Shown: positions 9,655-41,537 of the stretch, piece by piece
Numbering within the stretch: position 1 is the first letter of the stretch
Layout of the letters: every line of letters starts with the position of its first letter
Source of the DNA: Pelomyxa schiedti
Lineage: Eukaryota > Protista > Evosea
Assembly (NCBI GenBank): GCA_020536535.1
Contig: JAHLWZ010000489.1
Span: 5,139 to 69,138, forward strand
Length of the DNA stretch: 64,000 nt
Direction of reading: 5' to 3'
The notes under the pieces: generated by a model
What the model saw: only the letters and a program-made list of their open reading frames with translations
Database searches by the model: none
What the model was told of the DNA's origin: nothing
Program-made: the position numbers and the translations under genes

Positions 9655-9782
9655 AAAAAACGAGTCTCGTGCTCTGGAATGCTATTCGATCAGGCTCGGG
9701 GGGAAGTACCCAGACGTAGCCCAGGCAGCGCCCGACCACACGAATCCCATCCACTAGCACAAGTTTCGCTGCCCTGGTGGGC
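9655..9782 (-). ncRNA. Novel structured small ncRNA, family member A (~128 nt)
   Basis: ACCCATAA 61 nt upstream; 5' hairpin GCCC-ACCA-GGGC; closing helix GCGA/UCGU; inner helices CUUGUGCU/AGCACGAG, AUUCG/CGAAU, GGUCGGGC/GCCUGAUC; ends in U6. Confidence 0.75.
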
Positions 9783-9836
9783 AAAACTCCGACCTGCACT
9801 GGCCATAAGTTAGTCCTCCAGTTTCCTCAAACACCC

Positions 9837-9844
9837 TTATGGGT
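9837..9844 (-). promoter_or_regulatory. DUSE-like upstream element ACCCATAA for ncRNA A
   Basis: Same motif and spacing (-61) as upstream of U2. Confidence 0.7.
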
Positions 9845-10033
9845 GGCAGCTCTATGCCTGGACAGATGAAATGGATACTCCTTTACCATGCATTTAGTGG
9901 TAGGAATCATTTCTCCCTCTTCTTTTAGGTTTATAAATATGGGGTATGTTACAATGAAAGTGGGGCCGGTTGTTGTGTTGTTGGGTTGATGTAACCAGAA
10001 CTTTCCGTGGGCTATACATACAAACTGCAGGAA

Positions 10034-13000
10034 TCAAGGGTCACCCGGGGATGGTGGAGTATCAGGAGGGGAACAGTCCTCAACGCGGCAGTGCCGCATC
10101 CTCTTGTTTTGCATCCACTTGCAGCCAAACACTCCGGCAGCTATGGCACCACCGCCGGCACAAAGTCCGGCGATCGAAACAAGTGCCCACGCCCACGCAA
10201 GGTTCTTGTTGTGGTGATTGGGTTTCCCGGATGATGACGACGGTTCGGGAAGTGACTCGACGGGGGAGGACGAGGCCAATTCGCCGGAAGAATCTGCGGG
10301 GGATTCTGATTCTGATGTTGAGTGCGAATGTGAATGTGAATGCGATGTTGAATGAGAGTGACTGGCCGAAGTGGAATCGGAATGTGAGGGGACTTGGGAG
10401 TGGGGGTGGGATGTGGATCCAGAATCAGAACCGGATCGAGAACCGGAACCGGATTTGGAGACGGATGTGGATACAGATTCTGACAGTGAGGCTGAATGAG
10501 AAGATTGTGAGTAGGAAGACTCGGATACGGATGAAGAAGACTGGGAAGAGGAGGAAAATGACTCAGACGAAGAAGACTGTGACGATGATGACAGGGACTC
10601 AGACGAGGATGATTGCGAGGAAGATTCGGATTCTGATAGTGAGACAGAGTCGGAATGCGATGACGACAAAGAGAGCGAATTTGAGGATGAAGACTGGACT
10701 GAGGAAGATTGTGAGGAAGATAATTGAGAGGAGGACGACTGTGAAGATGACTGCGACGATGAAGATGACAGTGATAAGGAAGCAGATGATGATGACTGCG
10801 ATGAAGATGACTGCGACGAAGATGAGTGCGACAAAGATGACGAAAAGGACTCAGACGATGAAGCGGAATGAGATGATTCAGACGATGATGATACTGAAGA
10901 AGATGATGACAACGAAGATGATAAAGAAGAAGAAGACTGGGACTGTGATGAGGAGATTACACAGCACTCTTGATTTCCACCAAGGTTATCAAGGCCTTCG
11001 GGACATAGTGTGCACCCACGGGTTTCGTTCGTTGCATCACCACCATAGCCCCGTAAGCACCAGCAGAAGGAGGAATTAGTTGTGGAAGTAGAATGTAGAG
11101 GACAGGGCACGCAACTTCCTACACCACCAAGTGAATATGTTCCAGGTTGACAGAGCAAACAGTAATTTCCACTTTTCCCACTTCCCGGTAAACACATGCA
11201 TCCTGTTGCAGCTCTGTTTATCGTCGTAGTATTGCCCGGGCAAGTAGTACAATTGTTGTTACTTGTTTCTGATTTGTAAGTGCCCTCCAAGCAAGGGTTG
11301 CAGCTTGGTCCACCATAGCCTGGGTTGCACAAGCACATAGTGTGATTCGATGTAGTGGAAGAGTTGGATGGGCATGAGCCACAGAGCGCGTTAGCGGTAG
11401 TCTGTTTGTATTTATTATTTTGGCATAGGGTACACTGGGACAGTTCAGCTGAACCCTCATATCCTGGGAGGCATAAACAAGAGCTTTTAGACACCTTCCC
11501 AGTTCCAAGGGTAGTCGAATTTGGTACACATGGCGTACATGCAGAATTGGACGTGTTATTTTTGAAGGTTCCTGTGGCACAAGGAGTGCACACTCCAGTA
11601 TTCAATGAAAAGCCTTCAAGACATAAGCACTGTGAGGAGAGAATAGAGGCTACGGCTAGGGTGGTGGAGTTTCCTATGCAAGGAGTGCAAACTGCGTTTG
11701 AAGTATCGGATTTATAAGTTGCAGTCGCGCAAGGAGAACAGCCCAGTATAGAATCAAAGTTGGTATACCCAGGTAGACAATAAAACTGGCTTAAAGAGGT
11801 GGCTCCCAGCGCAGTGGTATTTGTGTGAGGCGGGCCTGTTATGCAAGGAGAATTGCCTTGGCTCGCCTTGTAAGTGCCATAGGGGCAGAGGGTACAACTG
11901 CCAGAAGTATCGTTTGCATATCCACCATATCCTGCTTTGCATACACAGTCCTGGATGGTAATAGAGGTGTTTTTATTGTTGGTGGAGGAGGCAGTGCAGT
12001 GAGTGCAAGCAATGTTGGCGTCTGTTCCTTTGTACTGATCTAAAGGGCAGGCTGTGCAAACTCCGGTTGAGGCATCTCCTCCATATCCCTTGGAGCAAAT
12101 ACAAGCGGACCGTGCTTTCTGACCAGTCAGACCGAGAGTTGTTGAGGATGTAGTACAGCTGGTGCATGACCCTGTATTCAGCCATGTATCCTTGTAAGTG
12201 TTCACAGGGCAAGCTGTGCAGCTGCCTGTACTAGCATCTCCATAATTTCCTTTATCACATTTACAATCACTTCTGGTGGACGAGCCTAGTTTTTGATTTG
12301 AGGAGTTTGTTGGACATAAAATACAGTTCCCGTTAGAAGTTGCGATCTTGTAGTAGTTTGTTTGGCAGATGGAACAGCCAAGGGAACTAGAGGCATTTCC
12401 ACTGAAACCAGGCAGGCACTTGCAGTATGAGATGCTGTCCGCACCGAGTACTGTGTCGGTCGTGGAATTCCCTGTGCAAGACGTGCAACTATTTGCGTTG
12501 CCTAGTGCACTCTTCCAGGTATTAAGTGGACATTGCTGACAAGGTCCACCTGTTTCTGCATGGCCATAATACCCAGGAAGGCAGCTGCAAGATGTTATTG
12601 CAGTACTTCCAGTGGACGAAGTGGTTGACTTAGAGCAGCACGCCGTGCAATTCACGTCATTTCCCCAGGAGTTTTTATAAGTACCTAGTCCGCAGGCTGT
12701 ACAAAGTGCTCCAGACGCGAGCCCAGCATTTCCCCAAAATCCAGGTTTGCACAAGCATTTAGTTTTCGCATCAGATGCAGTAGCACTATTGGTGCCACTA
12801 TTAGATATACAACCAGTACAATCTGTATTTCCTCTGGCATCCTTGTAGTAGTCTGCAGAGCACGCAGAACAGGCTCCTGTAATGTACCCATAGCCTTTTA
12901 TGCAAGCACAATCAGATACTGAAGTTGCAATCTGAATTACTGTAGTTGCTTGTGAAACACATGCTGTGCAAGGAGTATTTGCTGTAGCTGACTTCCAGTA

Positions 13001-15769
13001 GTTGTAACCACATACATCGCAGGTAGCAGGGGGAGTGAAAGAGGTATTTTTATAACCAGGCGAACACTTACACTGAGATGGAGATGTGGAGCCAGAAGCA
13101 CTAACGGAGTTTGTGGGGCAGGTGCTACAAGGATCATTTGATAGTACGTCCTTGTAAGTGTTGATTGCACAAATTTGGCAGGACCCCGCTGATAAAGTGT
13201 ACCCTGGACTGCACAAGCATTGGGAAGACAATGTTGAAGTTTGAGAGCTAGTGTTGCTGTAAGCGCCACAAGAACTGCAGGCGCTATCCAATGCTGTGGA
13301 CCACTTCCCATATCCACATACTTTGCACCCACTAGGAATTGCAGACTTTCCAGGATCGTTTGAAGTGTACCCCGCTTTGCACCGACAGTCATTTGAGCAG
13401 TAATGCCAGCTATTTGCTGGACACGTCGCAGTGCAGTTTACAAGGTATGATGTGAGGGGACACAGGCAGCTTCCATATGTCCCTGCTGAGTATCCTGCAA
13501 ACTCACAGTTGGTTCCACAGGTCCTGTGTACAAACAAAAATGTTAGACACCTTGGGGTGAAAAGGAATTTACATCGATGTGCAACTGCATTTACCAGTCT
13601 CAAGAGAGCATACACCAGCTCCACTGCAGGTGCCATCAGTGCCACATAATGTTGAACAGGTTGAACCTCCGTAACCTTCATAGCAGTGACAAACTTTGCT
13701 GTCACTGCATATGCCTTGAGAACATAAACACAGTGATGCTTTGCCATAAAATGTCCTCTGTAAAAGGTCTCAGTCCAATGGAGGGGGGAGAAAAGCATAC
13801 GAATGATGTGGGAGACTGTCCTGTGTAACCACTCACATAGATATTTTCACTATCTGAGAGAATTGCAGTAGGCCACTCTGCAGATGAAGAGGTGAGTTGT
13901 CCGGCTGACATACATGTCCCATCTGTTGTACTTAGTCTCAAAATACATGCGTCAGTGACGTCAGCATATCTTGTGGTGGTGGTTACTTGGACGAAAATAG
14001 AACATGGCATACAGTGTCGTTGAACATAGAGATAGCTTTGCTGTAAACGGAAAAGCAGCATATATGGTGGTCCCAGAAACGGCAGAAAGTGCAAAGGCTG
14101 TTTCACCCCACGGATATGTTGCCTGAATTATTCGTTATATAATGATCAGGGAACAAGTTAGAACATACCGATGAGATCAAAGGCGGTAGGATGTATGATT
14201 CTTGGTAAGCACGTGCCCACTGGCAAGTCAGAGTGTAACTTGACCCTTGGCCAGTTATTTTTGCCAAAAAAACAGCTTCAGTTGTTGCTGTGAGAGAAGT
14301 GCTACAAATAGTGGTGGTGCCATTGAATCGTCCAAAGATATAATAAGCATATGATGAGGTAGTGATGGATAAAACACCAAGTTCACCACGAGACCCAGAA
14401 TTCGGCGATACAACAGAGAGAGGGGTGACAGTAGCACCAGTATCTGGGTCTGCAAGCCATTTAGAGTTCAAGGTTTTCAGACGGTACCATACTCAGACAA
14501 TAGACATAGCTGATAGTAGGTGTTGATACACCCACTATAGGGTAATATGTCGAGGTGGGAATGTATGCCTGAATTCCTATGGATCTGATTGTCCCAGATG
14601 TCGTTGAAAGTTTCACAAGCCATGAAACAGATTGCCCGATCATTTTCATGACCCAGGCCTAGTTGGATCAGTCAAAGGGCACCGGTTTTGATAATACATA
14701 CATCCCGGTTTGGAGAGGAGTATATTGAGTAGGTTGTGTCATTGTACGCTGCATAAAAAGGAGCTCCTGATAGGGCAACAAAGTATCCTCCCCAATACAA
14801 CGTATTCGATGAAGCCTGAATGAATTGTGTCACAACGGAGAGATATTGTAAAACAAGTACTCATACTTGATAGGAACACGCTGTGGGTGCAATGCCTCCA
14901 TTGACAGTGGATTTAGTAACATGTACCCAAGCTACAACGCCATCAGCACCTACACGCATGACAAAGGGCATTCCATAGGTAGCCGTGCCAAAATCAGACC
15001 GTAGAATCGAACCAAAATAGGTTGGCCCACTCACAAGACCAACAACAAACACTCCAGATGTAAAAAAAAGTTAAAGGAAACGCTCAAAAGTAACAGAAAA
15101 AGGGATGTAAAAGGATATCCACCAGCATCACATATGGCGCACATTTGCGCTTTGAAGCTTGAACTTATGGTTCCATCAGAAGTAACTCTTGTTACCCATT
15201 GGTAGGTTCCATTAGTAAAGAGTTTGGCAACGTAGCCAGTTTGAGTTGCAGTAGAGGACAACTTTTGTGAGTTAGTATTTTCTCAGTACAATGGGGGAGG
15301 AAAAATACTTGGTTTATGACTATCCCAGGTGGGAAAGTCCAACTTGCTCCACCCGCTGCACCAGTCAAAGTTCCTATTGTATAAACCTACAGATAATAAA
15401 TAACCCACCTCCACAAAATACTCTTTAACCAACCTCCAAAATTTAAAAAAAGAAAGGAAACGAAAAAAAAAGGGGGAAAAAAAAAAAGAAAACAACCTGG
15501 CCGGCAGACAACACTGCAGTCGGACCCATCATCATGTTTGAGCTCGTCGCGGCCAACGCCCCAACCCCAGGCGACTGCGTCCACACGTCCCCGAACATCC
15601 TGTCCTCCCCAAAAACCCCGCACCCACTCATCATCGTCATCACCGCCGTCACAAACAAAATCGCCAACGCATTGTGGGTGGTACCGCCCTCCCACATTCT
15701 TCTCCTCCTGCTCCTCCCTCGCGAGGGTGCTGCGTGCGCCCTGCAACCACAACTAATTTTACACGACAT
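10034..15769 (-). CDS. Giant type I membrane Cys-rich surface protein (beta-propeller-like N-terminus, GCC2/GCC3 ephrin-receptor-like repeats, Ser-rich stalk, TM)
   Basis: Hydrophobic N-terminal segment; repeated YVAKL/FVMRV/FLAKI..W motifs; many C..C..GTYK...N..C..C...STT...C.C.PGY repeats; poly-Ser stalk; TM LAWAWALVSIAGLCAGGGAIAAGVFGC; short tail. Start codon uncertain. Confidence 0.8.
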
Positions 15770-15979
15770 CAACAGCAGTATGTTTTGTTTCGTTGAGCTC
15801 TTTTCAGAGAATTTCCGTCACCCAAAAACAACGCGTGGGTTCCTGCGGGATTCCGGACCTCCAGCCACTCCCTCCCCCAACAAAGGGCACCAACCACCTC
15901 CCTCTTGTTCCAATTCACACCCCCCAGTTGTGGGTGTGGAACAGCCGGTCCACATCACAATAATCAAAACCGTTTCGAA

Positions 15980-18900
15980 ATGGCATCGGCGCCAGTGCCC
16001 GGGCAACGGCTGAGCGGCATCGACTCTAGCGACGCGTGGCCCAGCGGCTCCACGTCCCCGCCGCTGCCGCCCAGGGGAGCAGCACCCCCAGCCACGACCA
16101 CCACCACCAAGAGTGCCACCAGCATACAGTTCTCCGCCACGCTGACAACCGCCTCGCCTGTTATCGACGAAGGATCAGACGGCGACGGCTACGCGGGGGG
16201 CAACCCGCCAACCACGACGACTACCACTACTACTACAACTACTACTACGAGCGTGGGTGGTGATGGGGGTGGGGGCACAGGGAGCAGTAGCAACAAGAGG
16301 CGTCGTGGCGGGCACGGGCACGAGCACGAGCACGGGGGCGAGAGGGAGCTCCTGGATGTGGACGGTCGGTACCAACCTATATATATACTTGTAGCTATTT
16401 TTAGATAAAGCTGTGATTGAGTAACTTGTGTTACTGTACATCAATATGTATATGTACATATGTTAAGCCAGCTAGCGTGTGTGTCTGCGCGAGGGTGGTT
16501 TCGCCACACGCCATCTAATGAGCCAAAGAAGATGAACACCATGAGGGTGGGGGTGGTGAACGGCAACCTCTGGTTGCTTCATCTCGTGTGCCCAAAAAAG
16601 ATCCGCTGCCTCCGCTCAAGACGTGCACAAATCTGATTTCGTTGATCGCTGCCTGCAGAGAGCGAGCAAAGAGAGATGGCTTGTGGTTTGCAGTGGAAGT
16701 ATTTATCTCTATAATCCCGTTTGTTGTGGCTGGCTTTATTACTGCTGCAGTACTGGCGCTACTCTGGGGATTTGAAGAAACCTGGAACGCTCTTGGGTGG
16801 CAAGGATGGGCTACCATGGCTGTAACCATCTTTTTGGTTTTAGTTCTTCTCAAGGAAGTGACCCACCCAGCCGTCATGGTGATGGCAGCGGACCTAATTC
16901 TGGTTCACCTTGTTAGTGCATAAATTTTTTTATTCTCAGTGTGCACCAGGTCTGCATGACTGTTATAACCATTGATGATGCTTGTGCCGGTTTTGGAAAT
17001 ACAAGTGTGGCAACCATAGCTATTATGTTAATTGTCAGTGAAGGAATTAAGTATGCCTCCAGATTATTTTGTCGTCTTATCCTTTCAGAGAGACAAAGGC
17101 CTTAGATATTATTGGGCGTTATGTTCTTCCAAAGGGAAAACAAGTATAAGCGGTCTCACACACAAAAAAAAACTAAATTCACAAGGCCCGTTACTTGTGG
17201 TGGGCTCAAGTTCGCTTGTTAGTGCCAGTACAGTGCTTATCGGCATTCCTCAACAACACTCCTTGTGTTGCCATGAATATTCCTGTTGTGATGAACTATT
17301 GTAAAACAACGGGAAGAAGGTAATAACTATTACTTCTTCATACCTGACATTTTCAAACAGCCCGTCAAAGATGCTTATGCCACTGAGCTTTGGTGTAATT
17401 GTTGGTGGGCTTATTACTCTTGTAGGTACCAGTACTAATATGGTGGTTGTCGGACTGCTTCAAGATGTTGCTCCACATATAACCTTGGGAATGTTTGAAA
17501 TAGGTATTGCTATTTCACTTAGCATTTTTTAATGAAGTTAGGCATTATTGGCGTTCCACTTTCTATACTGACTGTACTCTACACGGTTTTTGCTTCCAGG
17601 TATTGCTCATGTGGCAACCAACCCATAACCTTTCTTAACAAAGGCTTCTGCCAGACGACCGCCGTACATCACTTATGGAAAGCTACACAGGAAATCAGCA
17701 TGACTATACTGTTACTGTTGCCGTTCAAAAAGATTCTGTTGTGGTTGGTAATACAATTGGAGGAGCTGGTTTAAGGAATCTCTCTGGGCTATATCTATTT
17801 GCTGTTGAGCGAAGATTGGAAGTATACGTCCAATAATATCTTTTCTTTTCCTCACAAATTATAGTTTTTGCCTGAAACGAATCCAGACACTGTAATTCTT
17901 GCAGATGATGTACTTTATTTCAGTGGAGCGGTAAAATCCGTGAAAGAGCTACTGGCAATAGATGGCTTGCAGCCTCGAGAGCATTCTAGAATTGCAGGAG
18001 TTCAAGATAAACACCTGGGATTGCTGGAAGTTGTACTTGACCCGAAGTCTCAGTTGATTGGGCAGACTATCAGAGAATCAAAATTCAGGTCAGTTGCAGC
18101 TGATGATTTTTAGACGACCACCTAAATGAACCAAAACAAGGACAACTTATAAGGCCTCGGTGGTTGCTGTCTCTCGACGGGGAAAAGCCATAAAAGGCAA
18201 ACTTGGTGACCTTAGATTGAAGCAAGGTGACCTGATACTGGTGCTGGCCCCACGCTCTTTTATACGTGATTACTCCAACAATTTTCTTCTCATATCGGAG
18301 ATATCAGGCAGCGCTCTCTTTTCATTTACACCGTATGTTCATAAAACAATATGGACGCCTTCACCCACTGTAAACAGATGGCAAGTGATTACGTCTTTAG
18401 TGTGCCTGCTAGTTCCAGTTTGCCTTGCTGCTACTGAAAAGGTTTCCCTTGCTACAGTCGGAATGGCCGGTGTATTCGGACTGATTATCACTGGAGTACT
18501 TACAGTGCAACAATGTGTCAGAGCAATAGAGGCACGTTCCCGTACTCCCGGCCACCGTCACCTTAACTATTTACAGGGCCTTGTTCTTATCACCGTGGCG
18601 GGGTCATTTGCCCTTTCCACCGCCATCAGCAACTCCGGTGTTGCAGTGACCATCGCCAATTCTATTGTAAAGCTAGTTGGACCTTGGGTATCTAATTGCT
18701 TCTTCAACACAGTACTAAAACAGAGTTTTAGGGAGACATTGGTCTTCTTTTGGGCATCTACCTTCCCACAGTTGCTCTGACAAATATAATGAACAACACC
18801 GCTGTTGTTGCCTTGATGTTCCCAATAGTGTATGCCACACCAGCCCCTTCCCCTTAAGTAAAGGATAATGTCAGGTGGTCACTGGTTGAGAGCACAGGAT

Positions 18901-19171
18901 TGGCCGTGAAAGCGGCAATGTATTGTCTGATGGTGTCAGCCTCATCCTGCTTTATTCTACCCATAGGATACCAGACTAACCTTATGGTAATGGGTCCAGG
19001 AAACTACACGTAAGTATCCTATAACCCGATTTTACACCTGATTTAAATATAATCCTCATACAACCAACCGATTCACACAGAATGGTGCACTTTATCAAAT
19101 TCGGAACCCCTCTGACTATCCTCCTGGGGGCAGCCACTATTCTGATTCCATATTTTGTGTGGTGTGACTGA
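15980..19171 (+). CDS. SLC13-family Na+/sulfate (or dicarboxylate) symporter with TrkA-C/RCK_C domains
   Basis: SAFLNNTP, PSKMLMPLSFG..GG.ITLVGTSTNMVV, TrkA-C segments (LIGQTIRESKFR; VAVSRRG...LKQGD), PIGYQTNLMVMGPGNY..F.KFG.PL. Confidence 0.9.
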
Positions 19172-19293
19172 GCAACACCATTTTTCACTCAAAAAAATCC
19201 TTTGTATCTGTACCGTGTTTTCCTCCATTTCTAAACTTGTTCTATCCTGCGATTAGAAATTCAAATTGAGTGCAAAGCGAAACGTCGTAGGGG

Positions 19294-21583: not shown

Positions 21584-24026
<2,443 letters not shown>

Positions 24027-26353: not shown

Positions 26354-26356
26354 TAT

Positions 26357-27464: not shown

Positions 27465-27472
27465 GCCCATAA
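27465..27472 (+). promoter_or_regulatory. DUSE-like snRNA upstream element (G)CCCATAA
   Basis: First C is 61 nt upstream of U2 +1; resembles the Dictyostelium DUSE consensus WCCCAYAA found at about -60. Confidence 0.75.
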
Positions 27473-27526
27473 TTTCTCTGTAAGCAGTAGCTGGGTATTT
27501 TCGAGGGCAGGGACAAACTGACCTTC

Positions 27527-27742
27527 ATACCTTCTCGGCCTTTTGGCTAAGATCAAGTGTAGTATCTGTTCTTTTCAGCTTAATATCTGAAAGCTGCCCA
27601 TTGGGTAGCATCGATATTAAACTTATTTTTTGTGGGGTCGCTGGGGGTGCCTGGTTGGTGGTGGGGCTTGCTCCGCCGTCAACTTGGGCTCCCTCCTGAT
27701 TGCCCAGGCACTGCACTGCCGCCTCGTGTGGTCAGCCCCACT
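27527..27742 (+). ncRNA. U2: U2 spliceosomal snRNA
   Basis: ATACCTTCTCGGCCTTTTGGCTAAGATCAAGTGTAGTATCTGTTCTT; branch-point recognition GTAGTA 27559-27564; Sm site ATTTTTTG 27625-27632; GCTTGCT stem III and CTGCAC loop IV. 3' end approximate. Confidence 0.97.
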
Positions 27743-29691: not shown

Positions 29692-30217
29692 CTTGTTGTT
29701 TGTTTGGTGAATGTTTATGTTTTTAGTGTTTGTTCTCTTTGACGAGAGAGTGTTGTTTGTTGCCTTGGTTGTTTGTTTGTTTTGTTTGCTTTTTTCTTTT
29801 GACAAACAAGAGCCAAACGGTTCCGCTTAAAAAGCCAGCCAGGCATCCACCGCTGCGGCACGCATCACGTTGTTCATTGCCCAAATTGATGAACGACTTC
29901 CGAAAGAGGGAAAAATCACAACACGAGTTTGCCAGTGACCTGTGATGGTTGAACTCTTCATCACTCCTTCTGCGCATCGCACTGTGCTCATGCACATCCG
30001 GACGGGAACAAAGGGCCCGCTTTTTAGTGTTCTTTCGGAGACACGTTCCGACAACGTCTTCTCTATAACCATCAACCGCCGCATCCTCGTCGCCCACTCC
30101 CCCTGTTGACGCCCCTTTCCCCACACCTCTTGTGAAGCAGACTTATGGGATCGCATTGAATAACACATGGTAGCCTAGATGGAAGAGTGAAGAACGACGA
30201 ACAAAGGGGTTGGCTTA

Positions 30218-30890
30218 ATGGTTACGGTACGGACTGCTCATCTGGGTGCAACGAGATCACTTGACAAGGGCGGCGGAGCCTGCGACTGGTCCTGCTACAA
30301 CGACGAACCGGACCGCGAGCGGCATGATGGCGACTGTGATACCTACATGGAGAGCCCACTACGCTACAATGCCTGCCTCGACACAGAGGTTGGCGATGGG
30401 GTTTGTAACAGCTACTGCTACAACCAGTTTGGTGACCGGGACGGCGGCGACTGCGGCAGAGTTCCCACCTCTCTGTTCTCTATGCAGTATCCCTCCTCTC
30501 CTCTTCTTGTGGGTGGTTTATTATTATTTATTAAGGTTTATAAGAATATAAGAATATAAGAATTGCCTTTCCTAACTCCAAACAACAGATGGGACCTACC
30601 GTGGCGAATTCTGCCACATGGACTTCATTGGTGATGATGACATGACTGCGACGTTTACTGCAACACGGATGAATGTGAATGTGAATATGATAGCGGTGAC
30701 TGGGACTTTCGCTGCGTCTACTACGAAACCGCGTTCACAGATGACACATGCACCGGCGACGTTCTCACGGTCAGTACTTACTATTCCCATTCCCGGGACT
30801 GCGGCCGCTACTGGGATGACCCCTCGACCTTATCTGCAGACATTCAATGCCCTAATCGACGACTGGTTCGAGGAAGAGTATGTTCGTGCT
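30218..30890 (+). pseudogene. Degenerate inverted LNR-repeat gene copy
   Basis: VGDGVCNSYCYNQFGDRDGGDC and ..FNALIDDWFEEE match the family, but frames shift and there is no signal peptide. Confidence 0.65.
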
Positions 30891-31057
30891 TATTATTATT
30901 ATACAAGTAATTTAATATTATATTTCTCGTCATTGATGGCTGCTGACTGATCTCGGTTGGTGGTGCCTCTGCTGCCAGCAGCTAAAACCCCTCCTCTATG
31001 TATATCTTTTTAAGAAGAAAAAAAACTGAGTGTTATGAAAACAAGTTTTTATTTCTC

Positions 31058-32610
31058 TCAATTTCTTAGGATCGTGAAGCGAGACAGGCAGCCAATGCAC
31101 ACGGCCGGTACATACTGTGTGTTGCTTGTGAGTGTGGTGTTCAATATTTCACGCCCATTGACTTTGAATGACACTTGCAAGCCTTTGTCCCTGCTGACCT
31201 CCATGATGACAGATGAACCTAACCCTTACTTCATCAAAGTATTCAAACTTGGGTGAGTCGGGGGATCCCCAATTCATCCTCACACCCAGTGCAACCTGGG
31301 GATTCCATTGGTCAGGAAGGTCTTGTATTGATGGGCTTTTCCGGCATAGTTCCTGTGGAACAAGTGCGAACTGAAATGCACCACATGCGGTCACTTCCAG
31401 TTTCAGGCTGGATGCTGGCAGCAACGGCGATGTGAGGAATGCCATTACACCCCCGGCGGATGCAGTCCGATAGCATGTGTCTCCTTCCACCCGGACTGAA
31501 CTTTCCTGAAAATAGTGTCAGTCAGTAAATGTAAGAATGAAAGGGACTTACAAGCTTGGAGGTGTCCCACTGCCACTTGGGTAAATCTTGCAGTACGTTT
31601 GCTTTGGAAAGTTCGAGCAGTTTGTCAACTTTTGCTTCAAGAACACTGAGGTCATGAACAAGTTTCTGTTCAAGTTAGTTTTGAGATGTTACATTGACGA
31701 TGTTACAGAATTCAGTGTGTTAAGTGATTCTATCTTGGAATTTTGGGAGGCTATTGTTGCCCTGAACTCGGCATGTTCTCGGGTGAGTTTCTTTTCAGTG
31801 TTGGTGAATAATTTGCGGAAAAGAGAAACATAAATACCTCGTTTTGTGCAGATAAAGACTCTATTTTTCCATTCAGCACGTCAAGATGGGGCCGCAGCAA
31901 AACTAAAGGGCAGGATTCCTTGTGAGAACCAAGCTGAGCTCTCTTTCCTGATTAATATGTGAGGTATTTGGGAAGGGGAAATTTGAAATACCCTTCCAGG
32001 AACACTGGGGGGATTCGCAAGGAAGGAGTGCACAAGAGCAAACTCCATTATGCATGGGCATGTTTTTTGGAGAAACCAGCTCACCACACCCATTCGGGCA
32101 CTCTGTAAAGATATAAGACGTAGTCGAGTGAAGTAAATACCAGCAGGAAGTTGCTTGCACTCCAACTGGTGGTTCTTAAAAGATACACGCGCACCAACGT
32201 CACCACACAAAATACATTCAACCTGGAGTTGATCCACCTTTCCAAACGGTTAGTTACTCTACATATATATACATACATATATATCAATCACTGAGATAGC
32301 CAGAAAGTCAAAACCACAACCACCCATAATTCAAACAGCCCAACGGCAACAACAACCCAAATACACACACACGCACCACCACGTGGGCCTCGCACAGGAT
32401 GGTGCCGCACGAGTGCATGACAGGCGCGACGTAGGGCCCCCCGCACACCCCGCACACAAGCAGCCCGCTGATGCTCCCCTCGTTGATGTACTTGTACATC
32501 CGTGTGCTTGTTGGTGTTGGTGTTGGTTGTGGTTGTGGGGTGCATCCTGGGGCACCAGCTCCCACTGCTGCTGCTGGAACCACCTTGGTTTGTCCTGGTC
32601 CACCCGACAT
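31058..32610 (-). CDS. RING finger + TRAF-type zinc finger + coiled-coil + SPRY-like protein (probable E3 ligase)
   Basis: YKYIN...LVCGVCGGPYVAPVMHSCGTILC, ECPNGCGELV....H..VC....PC...CSW; C-terminal VSFKVNG...YVPAVC. Confidence 0.75.
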
Positions 32611-32903
32611 GTCCTTGGTGTTTTTATGGGAAGGGATAAGACTGTGAAGAACGCGCTTGTTGGGTCTTGCACAAGGAGAGCTCGCATGGGCATTTCTCCA
32701 GCTCCCTCTGGAGAGATTAGATTCGGGAAAGAGAGGCCTTATTTTGGGTACTTTTTTCTTCATCTTGTCATCAGGGCGTTCTGGGAAGAAGATCTTCTTA
32801 CTGGAGGGACACTTAAGAAATAAAAATCAATCAATAAACCTAACGCGTCGCTGCGCGATCGTTAAACGCCGGATTTGCGACAAGATCGTTGAAACGTACA
32901 CAA

Positions 32904-33726
32904 ATGGCCAAAGGAAAGAAGGAACTGGTCGCCAAACTCATTTTGATTGTTTGCGGGCTCGCTTTCGTATGTACAAACGACGATATAATATATATGTATT
33001 TGCCAGGTTGTAATGAAAATATATGCAGGTGGTGTGCTGCGCGTTTTACGCTTGGCAAATATACCTTGCTTCTGACGTTGATACTAACGGCTCCGCTGCG
33101 GGTGGTCACGAAGTTGACCTTGGAGGTTGGCTTTCTACAACGCTTTAGCTTTAGTTTTCGACTTACCTCCTTTCCCATACACTTAGGTGTCATCAGCAAC
33201 GCAGTGTGTATTTTAGTATTAATCATTATCTGTGTACTCTGTTTCATTGGGGCACTGAAACAAATAATTGCAGTCCTTGGAACAGTGAGTTCACCCTCAC
33301 ACAATGCGCGAGCCTTATGTACATTTTAGTTGATTCTTTCTGGGGTTATCATGTTCCTTCTGTGCCTTCTCCAAATTATCTTCTACCTCGTTGGACGTAA
33401 CACTTGCGATGACAGCTCTTTCTTTAAGTAAGTAGGTATGAACCCTTGCCAGCATCTGAGTTCCCTTACAGTTACGTTTGTGACCATCAGACTTGGTGGC
33501 TTATTATCGTGAATGCTGTGATATGCGGACTAGCGGTAATATTTTCATCTGCAACTTGCAGTTCCAACCAAATACACAGGCACTTAGCATTGTTTGTTCC
33601 GCTGTTCTATTGTACTGCAAGTCAAAAGACAAACCAGCAGATACTGCCCTTGGTAATGCTTTTTTCTTTCCTCCACCAACCAAGCACTAACATCCACCAA
33701 CAGATAACTACTATCCCAGTTCCTAG
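32904..33726 (+). CDS. Small four-transmembrane protein
   Basis: Exons join via GT-AG introns into a protein with four hydrophobic segments. Confidence 0.6.
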
Positions 33727-33876
33727 AGAACCAGCCATTAGGCAATATGTAACTCCAACTACATCACCCCATACCCCGTTGTATCAATTTAAAAAACCCT
33801 CGAGTTTTGAAAAACAATTAAAAAAACCCAAGCAATTATTATTATTATTATTAAAAAGCAACGATAGGCCCTAGGA

Positions 33877-36800
33877 ATGATGCTCCGTACATCAACCGGG
33901 GAGTCAATCGTCGACGAGTCGATAGCCCACTGCGGTGACGTCGTTGCCCTGCTCTCGCTGTCCGCCCCAGGCCACCTCCAACAACAACCCATAATGCCCA
34001 TCCAGCAGCACCAACAAACCCAGGTACCCCCACAACAGCAAACAGTGATGACACAACAACCACTCAACTCCGCACCAAATGCAAATGTTGGTGTTGGTGT
34101 CCCACTGAGTGGTGCCCCCCACGATACTACAATGGCGTCATCCCATAATCACCCCCAGCCAAAACGCGGGGACGGGGCTTCCACCCGGCGGCATAACAAC
34201 CACAACAACCCAAATAACACCAACAACGGTGGCAATGTAGGGAGAGGGGGTGGCGGAATGGTCATTATGGGAGGGTGCTACTCCGTGGAGGACGTGGAGA
34301 ACGCCAACAACATCAACAACAATAACAACAACAATACCACCACAACACAACCTTCACACCATTTCACAAGACAACAACAACATCAACAGCAGGCACATAC
34401 GAATCGCCGCCAGCACAATAATAATAGCAACAACAACAACAACAACAATCACCATCAACAACAGCACAAGCAGTATAATAACAACAACATGGCCATGGGA
34501 CATCAATTAGGGGATATTGGTGGTTATGGTGAGAGGGTAGAGGGTTCATGTTGTTGTTGCTGTGGGGACGGAAGCTGGGAGAACATGGCCTGGGTATCTG
34601 CCTTGTTGATTGTATGTAATTCTTTCGTAGCATGGGAGTACCTTGTCATCACTTCGTTTTCTTTCTGTTGTTGTGCAATCTGCGCATACACTCGCTTCAA
34701 TTTGTGAATTCATTCTCATTGGTTCGTTTCAGGGATGCAAAGTTGTGGTGCAGGTGAAGGACGGCTCCAAGTATGAAGGGATATTCCATTCATCGTGCTT
34801 GGGTATTCTTCATACTATCTGTAGTGCTGTTTCATTTGGCAATAGATAGCCATGATGGCTACGGTGTTGTTCTCCAGATGGCCGTTATTAAGGCGGGTCC
34901 CCTTTGCACTGATAACAAGAGCGATGCAGCTTCCAAATCTTCAGATAATCAGACACTTCCGCTAGTAATTATACCACCCGAGGAGTTTGTTCAACTTCAA
35001 ATTGAGGATTGGGACTATGCTATACAAGCCTCAGGTCTTCCCACTGGCTCAGGTTGGAATGGTGTTGCTTGGATTTTAAAGACATACTCATTAATTATTC
35101 AGGCTTTGCCACAGACACTGAGATCAGTGCCCAAAGAAGGGTAGGTGGTACTGAACGTGAGCTCACACCATGGGTAGCTGAAGACACAAACATAATACCA
35201 GATCACCTCACTTTAGAGTATAACAAATGCCAACCAACAGCGTGAGATCTCACCATTTATACAGAAACACATTTTCGAGGAGTGGTTCAGGCTGGGATCA
35301 ATTCAAAACAAATGAAATGCTGTATGCCTTTGCTACCAGTGGAACATATTTCTCAAGCCTGTAACTAAGGTTTGGTGTAAAATCTACGTATACTGAGGAG
35401 CAGTACACAACTGTATTAAACAAGAATCACCCCAATTATTTGAAACAAGTGTCCACTGCAGAACGTATTGCCCATGAAATGGAAAAGGTGGGATTCTTCT
35501 TCTAGTACTTTTTCTTTTTAACACTATCAGCAACCTACTAGTAACCCTCACTTGGCTGAAGAAAGAGGTATCGCTCTTCCCGAATCGGCTTATTCGGAGG
35601 AGGACAGGTTGTCAATGCCTTTATAAAAATACCACTTAACATGAACCAGGTTCAGTGCAGTCATTCAAGACGGTGTTATGCAACCAACAGAACGCAAATC
35701 GAGCTCTCGATTTCCGATCAACCAACCCCAGTTTCAGATCTTTAACAATGGAACGGAAACGAAACCCTCTCCCAACTCCCTCACACCCCTCACAGAGCCC
35801 AATTCCTTGCCAGCTCAAAACTCCCAAACCCCTGCAACCGTGCCTCCCCAAGCACAACCACAGGGAACAAATCAACCACAATTACCTCAAATTTATATGC
35901 CACCCTCCAAGCGTAAACTACTTGAGCAGCAATTACAGAAACAAGGACAGAAGGCACAAATAGTCACTCAAGAGCAGAGTCTGGACTTTGGGCAAGGCAA
36001 TTCCCACAGTTCAGCTCCGCTCGACACAACCTCACAACAACCACCCCAAACTTCTTTGGAAAAATCTTTACCATCAAAGCAGCCCTTGATGCCACCTGCA
36101 AAACCACAGGCCCTCCAGCCAAGCATTCCATTGGTCTCAATCCCTGTAAAACCCCCACTTATAGCCATGACCATTCAACCCAAAGCAAAGTTTCCATCAA
36201 CAGCCTTATCTTCTTTTACTCCACATGTACCAGATCGCACATCAACTGCCGAAGAAGAAACCACATCAGAAGTGAAGTCTGGGCACACTCAACCATCTCC
36301 ATCAGGGGTATCTTCTCCAGGGTCTTCAGTATCAAAAGCCACCCCAACAACTCCAAGAACTCCAAAAACAACTCCACTAACACCCAGGTCACCACGTACT
36401 GTAACCCCAACAACCACCCCAACCACCACACCAGCAACTACACCCAGGGCCGCGCATAGTGGAGACCATGACACTCCTATTGACTCTCCCAGGATAAAGC
36501 AAGAGGTGAGCTATCAATTCCCATTTCTTCTGGTCTGATATTAACTTTTAGGGTGACTTGAGTTTATCCCCAGACTACGCAAGGTTTATTTTACCCCAAA
36601 CTTGAAGTTTCTAATGCTGTTTTAGGCGAAGCCCTGTTCTTCAAGTGTGCAAGTATTTATTATGTTATTTATTTTCACCTCCTCCAAGTGCCCGCCATCA
36701 CCCACACTTCATCCGCATGAAATGAAAGACAGAAGGAGCCCACTTTTCAATGAGAGGGTCAGGGTGAGGCAAGGTGTGATCACTGAAACCTTCAAAGTAA

Positions 36801-38260
36801 TTACCATTTTGTTTGTTTTTTTCTTAGACTCATTCCCACACAGCCTCAGGCCCCTCTCCAATCTAAAGATGATAAGGTTTCTTTCCTTAAATGGCTTACT
36901 TACTGTGACTTGCTACACAGATTGTTTCTGTTGAGACTAGCAGACAGTCACCACTCATGTCTCCTTTCGTCGATAACCCAAAGAGGATTCAAGCATTGGC
37001 CCTGGAACCTGCACCTCCACATGTGTCAGGTAATGCCATTTTTGTCACTTTTTTATCCAAAGTGTTTTACGCTCTGAAAAAGATGCTGTCATCAAAGATT
37101 TCCTCAAGTTCTCTCATGAAGCAAATTTACAGAAGAAAAAAGAAGAGGAGCAAAAAGTTATGAAGTCATTGAAGGACTTCCACTCGCAACTTCCAGTAAG
37201 GAAAAAAAAATAAACTCAAGTCAAAATAACCATCCCATCAGCAACTTTTGGCAAAAAAGAAAAATACTTCAGATACTGGAGTGACCAAAGTTTGTTCACC
37301 AGCACCCACCAGTAACGCAACTGTCTCCAAAGAAACTACTACTACAACCACGTGCACTGCAACACCAGCTTCACCTCCAGCCAGCACACTACCTTCTCCA
37401 GTAGTGAAATTGTCTCCTCTCGCTCCGTCATTCACCCCTTCAAGACTCCCCGCACCAACAAAAACAGCAACACCAAGTAATTTGTCAGTATCTAGCATTA
37501 CTCTCAATCCGTTAGCACCCTCTTTCACTCCTGGGGTATGTGGAAAACACTTTTTTGATGAAAAATATTCTAACCTTTTCTTACAAACAGAAAAAGGCAA
37601 GTCCTGTGAACTTTTCTTCTTAGCCATGTCTGATAGAACATTATTACCAGGATCAGCCACTGGACCACAGTAGCAAGGGGAAATCTAATGTCCACAGCTT
37701 CATTGACTCTATTTGCCAATCTCTTGTTGCCCTGAGGCAACAGAAACCAGACAATAAAAACTTCCGTGTGTAAAGAAAAGCTGATCTTGTCATTTGCTAA
37801 TTTTGTGGCAGCAATAACCTGGACTGGCACTGGCAGTGGAACATTCCCGGAAGACTTCGAAGACGAGAATACTATTGATGAGACTGATCTAGCAAGTGAC
37901 GAAAACGGGTTTTTATCCTTTTCCCCTTATTATTGCTTTGAATAATATTTCATATAGTTACTACCCCGATGTTATGTACCCACAGGTTTGTAAATTCGGC
38001 TGTTTATTTTCCCATCGTTAATCAACAATAGGCCGGCTACGTACTGGATCCTTTTCCTCCAATTCCTACATGTAAGAGTGATTCTTTTTCTTTATCCAAT
38101 GCTTACATCTAACATTACAATTTGCCGCGAACAGACCCGCCTAGTTTCATTCCTCCAGTATGTCTTGGTCCTCTTTGTTTATAACATATTGACCAACAAC
38201 CAGGCATTGGGAGTACCACCACCAATCCCAGGATTCCCACTTTATACATCCAGGTTTTGA
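33877..38260 (+). CDS. ATXN2: Ataxin-2/Pbp1 homolog (LSm, LsmAD, PAM2)
   Basis: GCKVVVQVKDGSKYEGIF; FATDTEIS..ERELTPW; WDQF..NE..FGVKSTY.E..YTT; NPHLAEERG..SEEDRFSAV; PAM2-like LSPLAPSFTP and LNPLAPSFTP. Ends approximate. Confidence 0.88.
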
Positions 38261-38313
38261 CCATAGAGCCCAATACATAAAAAAAAACAGAATCCACAAC
38301 CTTATTCGAAAAC

Positions 38314-38417
38314 AAAAAACGAAGGTGTTGTCGGCACCCACTCCCGCTAAGGAGTTAATGACGAATGCAGGTATCCTGCTTGTCGAGAACCGCAACATAG
38401 TCGTTACCCTTGTGGGC
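38314..38417 (-). ncRNA. Novel structured small ncRNA, family member C (~104 nt)
   Basis: TCCCATAA 62 nt upstream; 5' hairpin GCCC-ACAA-GGGU; closing ACGA/UCGU; UGUUG-CGGU/GCCG-A-CAACA; hairpins GCAGG-AUA-CCUGC and ACUCCU-UAGC-GGGAGU; ends in U6. Confidence 0.75.
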
Positions 38418-38472
38418 GAAAAAGCTGACCCAGGCGCCGCAGAAGAACAGGTAGATTTTCGCCCAACAGCTC

Positions 38473-38480
38473 TTATGGGA
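38473..38480 (-). promoter_or_regulatory. DUSE-like element TCCCATAA for ncRNA C
   Basis: At -62 from GCCCAC. Confidence 0.7.
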
Positions 38481-38669
38481 AAGTTTCGCTGGGTGTTCTT
38501 TCCCCCAGTGGAGGAGAGAAGGACGTGTTATTGCAATACAATTACGTCGAAGTACGTCAGACCTGACCAGGTAGACAAGTACAGTACTCCCTTTTTCGAT
38601 CTGGAAGGAGTGAACAGATTTGCACTTGATACTTCGTCGAACATTGCACTTCGGGCGTAGATCTTGTGA

Positions 38670-41069
38670 ATGTCAGGCGAGGTGGTGTGGCCGCGCGTGT
38701 TGGGGTTCGGTAACCCATTATTGGATATTACAGTCGACGTAAATGAGGCATTTCTCGCTAGGTCTCGTTTTTTTTTTTTTTCCCTTCTTTTCCCTCTGGG
38801 GGTCCTTTTTGGAACTGACACCCCTTATGCAGGTACGGACTGAGCCCGAATGCAGCTATTCTGGCTGGTCCAACTCACATGCCACTGTGCGTTAATTTCT
38901 AGCGTCTCCCCTTTGACATTTCGCCGTTTCCACCGTTTCTTGTTCGGCGCCGAGTTTAACGAATTTGATTGAATTGAAAAGATACGAAGAAGTTGGAGCA
39001 ATGACCAGCAAAAAGCTGACGACCGGCGGAAGTTGCTTGAATACCATGAGAGCAGTACAGGTCAATCCTTTTCGCTTTTACTCACCGTTTACTTTTTGCG
39101 GACTAACTGGGCGTAGTGGATGACGCAGAAGAAACACATGACTGGCTTTGTGGGCAGTATAGGAGTTGATATTCCCAACAGTAAATCTCTTCAAGATTTG
39201 GTGGTCAATTGCGGAGTGAAACCCCTCTTTATGACGGCTGAGAAGGCTCCAACCGGCACTTGTGCTGCTCTGATCTGCGGAACCAACAGGTTTTATCCTG
39301 TTTCTAACCCTAAACATAAACTCAACTCTTTCAGGAGTCTTGTTACGAATCTAGGCGCGGCAGATTTGTTCACTCACTGGCACTTTGAAAGCGACCTTGT
39401 CCAGCAACACATTGCTAACGCTGTTGCATTTTATGCTGAAGGATTTTTCGTCACAGTAGCGTCTCATACTTTAGTGGAACTTGGAAAAATCGCTCTTAAA
39501 ACCAACAAGGTTTCCCATTTATCCGTTTTTATCAAATCCTAAAACGCTTGCAGCCATTTATGTTCAACCTATCTGCAGTCTTCCTGCTTCAAGTACCAGT
39601 ATTTTGGAATGGCATGAAGCAAGTTCTTCCCTACGTTGACGTTTTATTCTGCAATGAGACTGAGGCTGGAGCTTTATCAAACCAAATGGGATGGGGAACG
39701 GTATCTCTCTACGAAGTTGGAAAATCTCTAACTGCAGTCAACAAGATATCCATTGAGGAAATGGCCAAGAGGATTGCGGGAATGGAAAAGGCCAATACCA
39801 AGAGGGAAAGGATGGTAATTATCACTCAAGGGCCAGATCCCACTGTTGTCTTCCATGGAGGAAGAGTACCTACCCCGATTCACATGTGAAGTTAACGACC
39901 GGCTAGGTTAACGTATTTCCCACCCCAGTCGTTCCAAAGGCCGATATTGTTGATACCAATGGTGCAGGGGATTGTTTTGTAGGAGGTTTCATTAGTAAAT
40001 TCATTGGAGCCTGGCCAAGACCAACAACTTACCAACCCTCCCTCAACGAATGTGTGCGGTCTGGGCAATATTGCGCAATGCACTGCCTTACGAATGTAGG
40101 GTGCTCATTTTGCGGTTTACCTAAGCAGCAGTATTACCCTCTCACTCGAATACTTCATTTCTCACTTTCTGTTAGCACTGGTCTGCAACCGGTAATGAAG
40201 GCATTGGCTTTCGCAACTGAGAAGTATTCATTGACTTTATATTCACTCCTTCTCATGCCCACATCCAGACACAAGAATCAAAAGAGACTGGCCTCTGGGG
40301 AACCCTACATTTCTCACCCGGTTGGGGTCGCTAACGTACTCACTGAAGCTGGGGTATGCTGAGCAGTTTTTAGTTTTTCATTTTATTCATGTTTTCTATC
40401 CAGGTTGAGGACCCCACAGTTTTAATGGCTGCTTTCCTTCACGAGTAACCTTTATCTTTTTTTGACAAGTCCTAATTTGTTTCTCAAGCACCGTGGAGGA
40501 TACTGGAACAACACCGGAGGAGATTGAGGCCGAATTCGGTCCCGCTGTCCGTGAAATTGTTATGGAAGTCACTGACAATAAGTCTCTTCCCAAAAGGAAG
40601 CGCAAAGAATTACAGGTTCGGGCGTTTTTACCCGTGCTACAAAGTCTCATTCCGCTTTTTAGATAGAGCATGCCTTGCACATCTCAAACTCTGCCAAGCT
40701 GATAAAACTGGCTGACAAAATTCATAACCTGGAGAGCTTAGCCCAGTGCTCCCCCTGGTTTGTTTCCCCTACCTTCCACCTCCCCTTTATTAACTCCGCT
40801 CTTTTTCCTTCATACCCACCAGGCCTGCGGATATAATGCGAGGCTACTTCATCTGGGGATTCATGGTGGCACAAGGGCTGTTTGGGATCAACAGCCGGCT
40901 TGATGCACGGGCCCGGGCCGTGTTTGTCAACACAAGGCTACCTCCAGCCCATGTGGAACCTGTCATGCCATCCCTTGTTCCTGCTGAACTGCAACCCCAC
41001 CTTATCCAATACTTGGAAGCCATGGACCGCATCGAGGCTGCTAAGGCTACTACCGCAACCAAACATTGA
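38670..41069 (+). CDS. ADK: Adenosine kinase fused to a MESH1/HDDC3-like HD hydrolase
   Basis: [52 protein letters not shown], then in frame [58 protein letters not shown]. Confidence 0.9.
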
Positions 41070-41267
41070 ACCACCAACACTCGAAGTTGAAGCCCATTAA
41101 AAAAATCAGAGTCTAGTTTTGAATCAAGATATTTCATGTGAAACACAGACCTTATTGGATTATCATCCCAAAAAACCTAAGCACCGACCCATCTACTCGG
41201 GAACCAACTACCTACGACGCAGAGAATTCCGAATTGTGGGTCTGAGGAAGATATTGTGTTGTGCAAT

Positions 41268-41474
41268 AAAAAACGAGAATTACTCCCTTATGGAGCACCA
41301 CCAACCTCCCAAGCCTTTTCAGCCCAGGAACGGACATTCCAGGGCTACATCAGAACCAACACACAGTCCCCACTTTTGTGGAGACTGCACACTGGAATCC
41401 AACAAACCCCAAAGAGCCTTAAGTCCATAGCACCCCAAGCAAAGTCTTAATTCCCGCCACCCACTTTTGTGGGC
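41268..41474 (-). ncRNA. Novel structured small ncRNA, family member B (~207 nt)
   Basis: ACCCATAA 62 nt upstream; 5' hairpin GCCCAC-AAAA-GUGGGU; 10-bp closing helix GCGGGAAUUA/UAAUUCUCGU; inner UAUGGA/UCCAUA, UUCCAG/CUGGAA, GCAGUCUCCAC-AAAA-GUGGGGACUGU; ends in U6. Confidence 0.78.
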
Positions 41475-41529
41475 AAGATTAGGCTTGTTCCCCAGTCTGA
41501 TAAATACCTATTTTTTTCCCGAAGGATCA

Positions 41530-41537
41530 TTATGGGT
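41530..41537 (-). promoter_or_regulatory. DUSE-like element ACCCATAA for ncRNA B
   Basis: At -62 from GCCCAC. Confidence 0.7.

Follow-up and report, generated by a model that had tools for sequence, protein, structure and literature searches.

A small family of putative circular RNA genes in Pelomyxa schiedti whose transcript ends are predicted to meet at a nick

Introduction

A window of the Pelomyxa schiedti genome, by which we mean the whole 64,000-nt stretch of DNA analysed, carries three small RNA units, all on the minus strand and none matching a known family. They raise the question of what kind of RNA is built with constant ends around unrelated middles. The original prediction had credited the units with five common features, namely the promoter, the +1 GCCCAC, the 5' hairpin, the closing helix and the T-run, and all five were confirmed (Table 1). 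Here we favour, with moderate confidence, the reading that the genome encodes, in these units, a small family of circular RNAs, which would arise in four steps by the sealing of a self-splinted nick, the enzyme being left unnamed.

Sequence data and searches

The genome was searched with patterns, with BLAST of each unit and with a covariance model, by which 150 of 15,260 candidates were scored. Thirteen pattern matches were judged on their first 80 letters. A test of nick geometry that ignored sequence was applied behind 101 CCCATAA sites and proved too permissive for use. The RNA evidence consists of assembled contigs, which carry neither strand nor ends and from which tips and rare variants are dropped. 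The two RNA runs that cover unit 3 (X3 and X4) represent a single sample of a single study, linked to a poly(A)-tailing protocol by year and label; the 2023 libraries of P. schiedti were poly(A)-tailed prior to Smart-seq2 (PMC10579272).

Table 1. Coordinates of the three units and of the U2 reference gene in the window; elements marked "fold" are predicted
Feature	Position	Strand	Basis or remark
Unit 1 promoter element ACCCATAA, DUSE-like	9837..9844	-	61 nt ahead of +1
Unit 1 RNA, predicted 124-nt circle, rod-like middle	9659..9782	-	fold
Unit 1 frame: 5' hairpin; closing strand AGCGA; partner UCGUU	9782-9771; 9770-9766; 9663-9659	-	fold
Unit 1 T6 terminator	9655..9660	-	
Unit 2 promoter element TCCCATAA	38473..38480	-	62 nt ahead of +1
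Unit 2 RNA, predicted 100-nt circle, three-way junction middle	38318..38417	-	fold
Unit 2 frame: 5' hairpin; closing strand AACGA; partner UCGUU	38417-38406; 38405-38401; 38322-38318	-	fold
Unit 2 T6 terminator	38314..38319	-	
Unit 3 promoter element ACCCATAA	41530..41537	-	62 nt ahead of +1
Unit 3 RNA, 203 nt, head-to-tail cycle	41272..41474	-	RNA contigs, runs X3 and X4
Unit 3 5' hairpin: 6 bp, AAAA loop, G1-U16 pair	41459..41474	-	fold; pair probabilities 0.93-1.0
Unit 3 closing strand GGCGG; partner UCGUU at 41276-41272; nick-side pair G17-U203	41454..41458	-	fold
Unit 3 long imperfect hairpin, G-U-rich	41333..41418	-	fold
Unit 3 short hairpin, GAAAA loop	41307..41329	-	fold
Unit 3 T6 terminator	41268..41273	-	first two U alone enter joined RNA
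U2 snRNA gene (27527-27741) with CCCATAA at -61	27465..27741	+	promoter reference, not family member

Promoters and copy number

CCCATAA starts 61, 62 and 62 nt ahead of G+1 in units 1, 2 and 3, respectively, and the predicted agreement with U2 (61 nt) was upheld. The spacing is 62-64 nt in 8/8 U6 genes of the same genome, each of which has a pyrimidine run before G+1. The comparison shows a DUSE-like promoter serving U2 and U6 in an archamoeba, beyond the dictyostelids. The motif on its own is common, with 21 occurrences in the window versus 7.6 in shuffled DNA, and so does not by itself identify an RNA gene. The second copy of unit 3 shows no difference in the 63 nt between promoter and +1. 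The description of the units as stand-alone small RNA genes with a DUSE-like promoter and no known family is supported. According to the available text of PMC7919456, DUSE is used by both Pol II and Pol III; the T6 end and purine start of the units suggest that they are probably transcribed by Pol III.

Many copies had been expected genome-wide. This was not supported, as the 52.4-Mb genome yielded, besides the three units, a single 95% copy of unit 3, counts that are lower bounds. Other pattern matches in the genome had no promoter or no UCGU-T5 end, or looked like coding DNA. Matches had also been expected to outnumber those in shuffled DNA, and here the full frame was found three times in the window and in 0 of 300 shuffles, using a pattern derived from the units themselves.

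Comparison with known RNA classes

Motif and Rfam tests bore out the earlier statement that the units carry no motifs of U1/U4/U5/U6, SRP, RNase P/MRP, U3, Y, tRNA or Class I RNA. The units have neither the 42-65 nt length of Class I RNAs nor their 11-nt motif beside the 5' stem. They have no SRP helix 8 motif and no Rfam match to SRP RNA; the Dictyostelium SRP model gave no match, and the protozoan SRP model located six ordinary SRP RNA genes elsewhere in the genome. No Sm site, U5 loop, U6 box, CR motifs, C/D boxes or Rfam match was found that would assign them to the spliceosomal snRNAs, RNase P/MRP or U3, and the U6 and MRP genes of P. schiedti were located elsewhere. Unit 3 contains the words CUGA and UGAUG, with no C box. 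A tRNA or permuted tRNA was rejected, as no cloverleaf was found in the linear or doubled sequence at the 80% threshold; the tRNA intron and mitochondrial modes returned only noise. With Rfam at the gathering score and at E 10, no family overlapped any of the three transcripts, as foreseen; the sole match touching unit 1 was SNORD19 (E 7.3), centred on the promoter.

Vault and Y RNAs are likewise few, short Pol III genes with paired ends and a variable middle, and their partner protein families occur in the genome (PMC7904556, PMC7058938, PMC4201824). The units might thus be vault or Y-like RNAs, circular or linear, bound by a single TROVE protein. The genome has one TROVE gene and six MVP loci, and homology search fails on the variable central domain of vault RNAs, which are few, short and Pol III-made (PMC7058938). 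We nevertheless consider this improbable. Vault genes have box A and box B (PMC7904556), whereas no unit has a box B and unit 1 alone has one loose box A-like match. The Ro-binding motifs GNCGAA and GGUCCGA are absent from the units, RRCGR being a loose resemblance (PMC4201824). The middles are tightly paired and not the open loop favoured by TEP1, an extra 5' hairpin and joined ends set the units apart, and Rfam gave no match for them.

Folds and the shared frame

On the minus strand, the fold energies of units 1, 2 and 3 are -54.8, -38.9 and -94.8 kcal/mol (z -3.4, -4.6 and -7.0), and 71-82% of each unit is paired in the predicted folds. The claim that the units fold only on the minus strand stands for unit 3, with its strong preference (-94.8 versus -47.2 on the plus strand), and for unit 1, with a clear one (plus-strand z -1.3), but was overstated for unit 2, where it is weak (plus-strand z -3.0).

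All nine frame pairs are formed in all four sequences compared (36/36 cells; the three units and the second copy of unit 3). Variation touches a single side of four pairs, and in no pair have both sides changed, which points to wobble tolerance and is not proof of covariation. No homolog was found beyond the P. schiedti genome, with pattern scans of viral and metagenome sequences giving chance, bacterial-looking matches, and hence there is no covariation. The strand to be joined, UCGUU/GCCC, is invariant in all units, and wobble changes that keep the pairing are confined to the partner strand. Most predicted pair probabilities lie at 0.93-1.0; that of the nick-side pair is 0.60-0.73. In all three units the 5' hairpin is predicted to lie flush against the closing helix with a zero-base gap. 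The most conserved stretch, 12-16 nt across this junction with little elsewhere, becomes contiguous only after joining.

In the predicted fold, unit 3 has a long hairpin that carries at its tip the same CCAC-AAAA-GUGG loop as the 5' hairpin. This long, near-perfect hairpin, in a genome with Piwi and RdRP genes, could mark the units as precursors of small silencing RNAs, the hairpin being diced and the joint described below a side product. We regard this as very improbable: units 1 and 2 have no long duplex, 32/83 predicted pairs of the unit 3 molecule are G-U, six differences between its two copies fall within positions 47-109 and one pair of the best stem is broken, and no target was found in the ~0.3 Mb of DNA searched.

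The head-to-tail joint of unit 3

Unit 3 assembles as a 203-nt head-to-tail cycle in two single-cell RNA runs (X3 and X4). The joint leads from 41474 to 41272, two U letters being assignable to either side; RNA coverage is limited to 41272-41474, and the contigs start exactly at the predicted +1. The U6 3' end proposed earlier was not recovered, the RNA being joined after UCGUU to G1. The X4 contig of 233 nt equals the 203-nt cycle plus a 30-nt overlap, which leaves no room for added letters at the joint, and neither poly(A) nor adapter loose ends are listed at either end of the contigs. The RNA matches two genomic copies letter for letter, and the joined form occurs neither in the genome nor in the DNA run (X2). 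No contig of unit 3 was present in a further run (X5), and none of unit 2 in X3, X4 or X5. The X3 contig depths match the bin means exactly and imply that junction words amount to ~74% of a fully circular pool; the joint is therefore not rare, provided that coverage is even, an argument that fails if the central hairpin is under-read.

The joint coincides exactly with the nick between 5' hairpin and closing helix, and the fold, made ahead of the comparison with RNA contigs, had already put the nick there. Since the joint sits at the nick and the geometry is common to the three units, the modelled frame looks like a self-splinted ligation site. The original prediction had seen in it a constant protein-binding scaffold; the constant frame stands, but as UCGUU is joined to G1 in unit 3 it is best read as a ligation nick and not as a scaffold alone.

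Linear Pol III transcripts folded as a nicked ring, with a frame that protects the ends and binds protein, would leave the same trace if the reverse transcriptase jumped from G1 to the 3' UU end. Smart-seq2 depends on template switching, and its template-switching enzyme can generate false joints. The RNA ends lie side by side, the joint is known from contigs of one sample, and Class I, vault and Y RNAs are likewise built of a closing stem around a variable middle. We hold such a jump to be possible but unlikely. Against it, there is one exact joint, which keeps two U where a raw Pol III end would have 4-6 and contains nothing added, and it seems a major form; flush zero-gap stacking in three units suits a ligation substrate. 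Poly(A) tailing should block the jump; had a tailed linear end taken part, A letters would be expected at the joint, and their absence counts for a true joint. We infer from the joint in the RNA contigs that the ring of unit 3 is likely to be covalently closed.

Unit 3 is intergenic and has no GT..AG splice signals at the joint, and so does not qualify as a back-spliced or lariat circRNA. Domesticated or selfish viroid-like or retrozyme-like elements replicating as RNA would also appear as small, 71-82% paired rings without a conserved ORF, and none was found in a rolling-circle reading of the units. Retrozyme circRNAs resemble the units as genome-encoded circles of 170-400 nt, closed most likely by a protein ligase, but are repeated retroelements cut by hammerheads (PMC7229834), whereas the units are single-copy promoter-terminator genes with no tandem units, and no hammerhead core or other self-cleaving ribozyme was found in them. 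The identity of unit 3 RNA with two genomic copies also speaks against RNA replication, which we find scarcely credible here.

Proposed mechanism and related systems

In the ligation reading that we prefer, transcription would begin at G+1 from a U6-type upstream promoter, as shown by comparison, and would stop in T6, presumably by Pol III. The first 12-16 nt are predicted to fold back as a hairpin and the next five to pair with the 3' UCGUU; the two helices would therefore stack end to end and bring G1 beside the last paired U. The unpaired U tail would be cut back to two U, judging from the joint, and the ends would be ligated into a ring of 203 nt for unit 3 and predicted rings of 124 and 100 nt for units 1 and 2. 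We tentatively suggest, with considerable doubt, that the ring, as an imperfect duplex that has no ends and is proof against exonucleases, acts by shape: dsRNA-binding proteins, for instance those of the RNAi machinery, would find in it a decoy or a scaffold, and it would not serve as an antisense guide. The variable guide proposed originally is not favoured, because the middles are unrelated and diverge faster than the flanks between the unit 3 copies (10/207 versus 13/633).

Five RNA-ligase loci were found in the P. schiedti genome, one of them with an Rnl5-type N-domain on contig C1180 and the other four being PF09414 loci; the TIGR02306 match is one exon and falls under the whole-protein cut-off. 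RtcB, Usb1, two Thg1 genes, RdRP and four Piwi loci are also encoded. The ligases are candidates for a role on these RNAs. If closure is real, the likeliest enzyme, with about even confidence, would be an ATP-dependent nick-sealing ligase of the Rnl5/Rnl type acting after conversion of the 5' triphosphate to a monophosphate. Usb1 trimming followed by RtcB ranks second and is rather unlikely, and a Thg1-like protein using the triphosphate directly ranks third and would be a surprise. Rnl5 seals 3'-OH/5'-P nicks within duplexes (PMC4408790), and the physiological functions of Rnl5-type ligases are described as uncharted in the available text of PMC5397189. It is conceivable, at somewhat less than even confidence, that a dedicated pathway exists in which the RNAs of stand-alone Pol III genes offer their own ends, as the sequence-specific nick UCGUU/GCCC, to a nick-sealing ligase and become stable 100-203-nt circles with interchangeable structured middles.

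The dictyostelid Class I RNAs share with the units a DUSE ~60 nt upstream, a T-run terminator, a 5' G, a short stem joining the ends and a variable middle. They differ in being 42-65 nt long, in having an 11-nt motif and many genes, and in having been found in dictyostelids only, and the available text of PMC7919456, on which this comparison draws, describes no 5' fold-back hairpin or circular form; the units are 100-203 nt long and lack the 11-nt motif. Whole transcripts joined start to end without the spliceosome are known from Bacillus DucS (PMC10504365), which at ~200 nt is of similar size, and from archaeal box C/D, SRP and RNase P circles (PMC12558985), and a protein ligase has been proposed for such prokaryotic circles. 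These are mostly isoforms of known linear RNAs, whereas the units are a eukaryotic family in which the conserved sequence is the junction. The permuted circular SRP RNA of Thermoproteus, as far as the available text of PMC4731332 describes it, likewise regains through circularisation a conserved element whose parts lie at opposite ends of the gene; the units differ in having no SRP motifs, with six ordinary SRP RNA genes elsewhere.

Engineered Pol III expression of circular RNA uses a U6-type promoter, an end-joining stem, twister ribozymes and the host RtcB. That system is artificial and ribozyme-dependent, whereas the units are natural and their ends are the transcript's own.

Conclusions

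Should the ring of unit 3 prove to be a reverse transcription artefact, the finding reduces to a new, though small, Pol III RNA family in one amoeba. If it is covalent, the units are a eukaryotic gene family built for circularisation via the ends of its own transcripts, having neither splice sites nor a ribozyme; a narrow literature search found no description of such a family. This would be a eukaryotic route to circular RNA apart from back-splicing, intron release and ribozyme cleavage. The units would then be natural, testable substrates for Rnl5-type nick-sealing ligases, and their 9-bp cassette might close arbitrary RNA cargo.

Gene units, promoter and family size

The three minus-strand small RNA genes of the original prediction (units 1 to 3) are present and intergenic. 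Unit 2 is flanked by a PAM2-motif gene on one side and an adenosine-kinase-like gene on the other, and unit 3 lies just beyond the transcript end of the adenosine-kinase-like gene. Each unit is preceded by CCCATAA, a DUSE-like promoter element, which also stands 61 nt before U2 in the window and 62-64 nt before the start in 8/8 U6 genes, each with a pyrimidine run followed by a G start; this similar spacing supports the promoter reading within the Pelomyxa schiedti genome. The word by itself does not mark an RNA gene: the window contains 21 copies where 7.6 are expected (2.75-fold over shuffles), and protein genes may also use it as a core promoter or start-context word.

The genome (52,367,397 bp in 5337 contigs; published assembly 52.4 Mb in 5337 scaffolds, PMC8887013) was searched with patterns including and omitting the promoter, with BLAST for each unit and with a covariance model. 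Many members had been expected genome-wide; besides units 1 to 3, the searches returned just a second copy of unit 3, and these counts are lower bounds. No homologs were found in the viral or metagenome contigs searched. The copy, on an 845-bp contig with 95.8% identity across its whole length, is probably an allele. Ten of the 207 RNA positions differ, every one in the middle (the variable core); the flanks differ at 13/633 positions and the 63-nt promoter at none. Of the RNA changes, four preserve pairing, two fall at unpaired positions and the other four disrupt three pairs.

Features of the window and of two further extracted loci (L068, L069)
Feature	Position	Strand	Observation
Unit 1	9655-9782	-	CCCATAA to G+1 (first transcribed nt) 61 nt; fold z-score -3.4; predicted nick pair A13-U124
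Unit 2	38314-38417	-	CCCATAA to G+1 62 nt; fold z-score -4.6; predicted nick pair A13-U100
Unit 3	41268-41474	-	CCCATAA to G+1 62 nt; fold z-score -7.0
Unit 1 predicted ring, end loop	9771-9782	-	ACCA on GGGC/GCCC stem, resembling a closed tRNA acceptor end; CCA not common to units 2 and 3; no cloverleaf found
Unit 3 rod loops	41370-41381; 41462-41473	-	CCAC-AAAA-GUGG at both ends; third loop GAAAA
Rejected candidate	17136-17210	-	Weak model match (12.6 bits, E 0.12) with GCCCAC start, T9 end and no promoter; treated as chance
GC-rich hairpin, two copies	L068:47-184; L069:1501-1635		133-136 nt, end CGT-T8; no nick fold; L069 copy lacks CCCATAA at -62; unassigned
CCCATAA sites (21, of which 5 read CCCATAATG)	e.g. 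19346; 33988; 34271	+; +; -	
Intronless ORF directly upstream of unit 1	10034-13798	-	1254-aa protein, ten ephrin-receptor-like repeats
Spliced RNA (single X4 contig, 1313 nt)	38655-41107	+	Adenosine-kinase-like exons, then HD/MESH1-like exons; TSO adapter at 38648, likely transcript start
Tandem duplication	52400-54810		Peptidase M6 (immune inhibitor A-like) domain matches; identical stretches bearing CCCATAA at 52441 and 54513
Intronless ORF	56496-59387	-	Long; Roco-type COR-kinase

RNA fold

The fold of unit 3, computed ahead of the read data, contains the pairs G1-U16 and G17-U203, so that the 5' hairpin and the closing helix would stack gap-free, with nucleotides 203 and 1 facing each other across a nick; the same geometry is predicted in units 1 and 2. 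Pair probabilities are 0.93-1.0 in this conserved frame and 0.60-0.73 at the nick pair. Throughout the family the joined strand UCGUU/GCCC is invariant, its partner strand GGGYRRCGR varies at four positions with pairing always kept, and the longest inter-unit similarity (12-16 nt) spans the junction. The middles are predicted to be 71-82% paired. Unit 3 has 32 G-U pairs among 83 and three A-rich loops, of which the two identical ones may have arisen by internal duplication or may be a protein-binding site in two copies.

Expression and the head-to-tail joint

Four sequencing runs (X2, DNA; X3 and X4, single-cell RNA from one sample; X5, a further run) were compared with window positions 38000-41900, holding units 2 and 3, using contigs that give neither strand nor level. 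X3 and X4 cover unit 3 exactly at 41272-41474 and both carry a head-to-tail joint, 41474 to 41272. The DNA run lacks this joint, and the genome does not contain the sequence it creates. The X4 contig of 233 nt goes once round the 203-nt cycle and overlaps itself by 30 nt, and both unit 3 copies are expressed in X3. No contig was found for unit 3 in X5, or for unit 2 in X3, X4 or X5. DNA carry-over looks low, as the neighbouring gene's introns are skipped and 38262-38523 is empty.

Unit 3 is quite probably covalently closed. The joint is single and exact, with no inserted letters, and holds two U against the 4-6 U of a raw end; these two are assignable to either end, and the TC before +1 in unit 2 favours a 3'-end origin. 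X3 contig depths reproduce bin means (50.5, 31.9), placing junction words at ~74% of a fully circular pool, an estimate that presumes even coverage and may not hold if reads under-represent the central hairpin. The joint could instead be a library artefact, given a protocol relying on template switching and evidence from contigs of a single sample. The 2023 P. schiedti libraries were poly(A)-tailed ahead of Smart-seq2 (PMC10579272); if X3 and X4 are such libraries, circles that had broken would enter them in permuted form, and a jump from a tailed linear end would bring A letters.

Comparison with known RNA classes

No Rfam family matches the units. They share their gene layout with Class I RNAs (PMC7919456) and would work like bacterial and archaeal end-joined circular ncRNAs (PMC10504365, PMC12558985). 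Narrow literature searches of incomplete coverage found no description of amoebal or Pol III end-joined circles. The units do not pass the tests that define Class I, SRP, vault, Y, tRNA, snRNA and retrozyme RNAs; a vault or Y identity is retained as a very improbable reading because TROVE and MVP genes exist in the genome. Other RNA genes located there comprise six for SRP RNA (contigs C455, C794, C834, C817, C714, C850), one 493-nt RNase MRP match (C811) and about 19 full-length U6 loci.

Candidate ligases, function and significance

Promoter, start and joint are established for unit 3. Pol III would transcribe the units, the U tail would be trimmed back to the helix, and the ends would then be ligated. 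The genome also encodes Usb1, two Thg1 genes and RtcB, which would require a 3' cyclic phosphate and a 5'-OH. ATP-dependent RNA ligases are encoded at five or more loci (C918, C1037, C1180, C451, C213), one of them with an Rnl5-type N-domain. Rnl5 seals duplex nicks with 3'-OH/5'-phosphate ends (PMC4408790), a specificity that would suit the unit substrate once its triphosphate is reduced. In Dictyostelium, a Thg1-like protein uses substrates other than tRNA (PMC5041481); RNA end-joining would be a new activity for such a protein.

The original prediction proposed a constant scaffold with variable cargo or guide, of which the guide role is now disfavoured: the middles are mutually unrelated and vary freely between copies, and no ORF is shared among the units. 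We tentatively suggest that each RNA forms a stable, imperfect duplex with no free ends, binding dsRNA-binding proteins or serving as a decoy for them; the genome has RdRP and Piwi genes. The units form a genuine RNA family, small and unclassified, and head-to-tail joining is directly evidenced for one of them, unit 3; the categorical newness of the family hinges on the circle being covalent.
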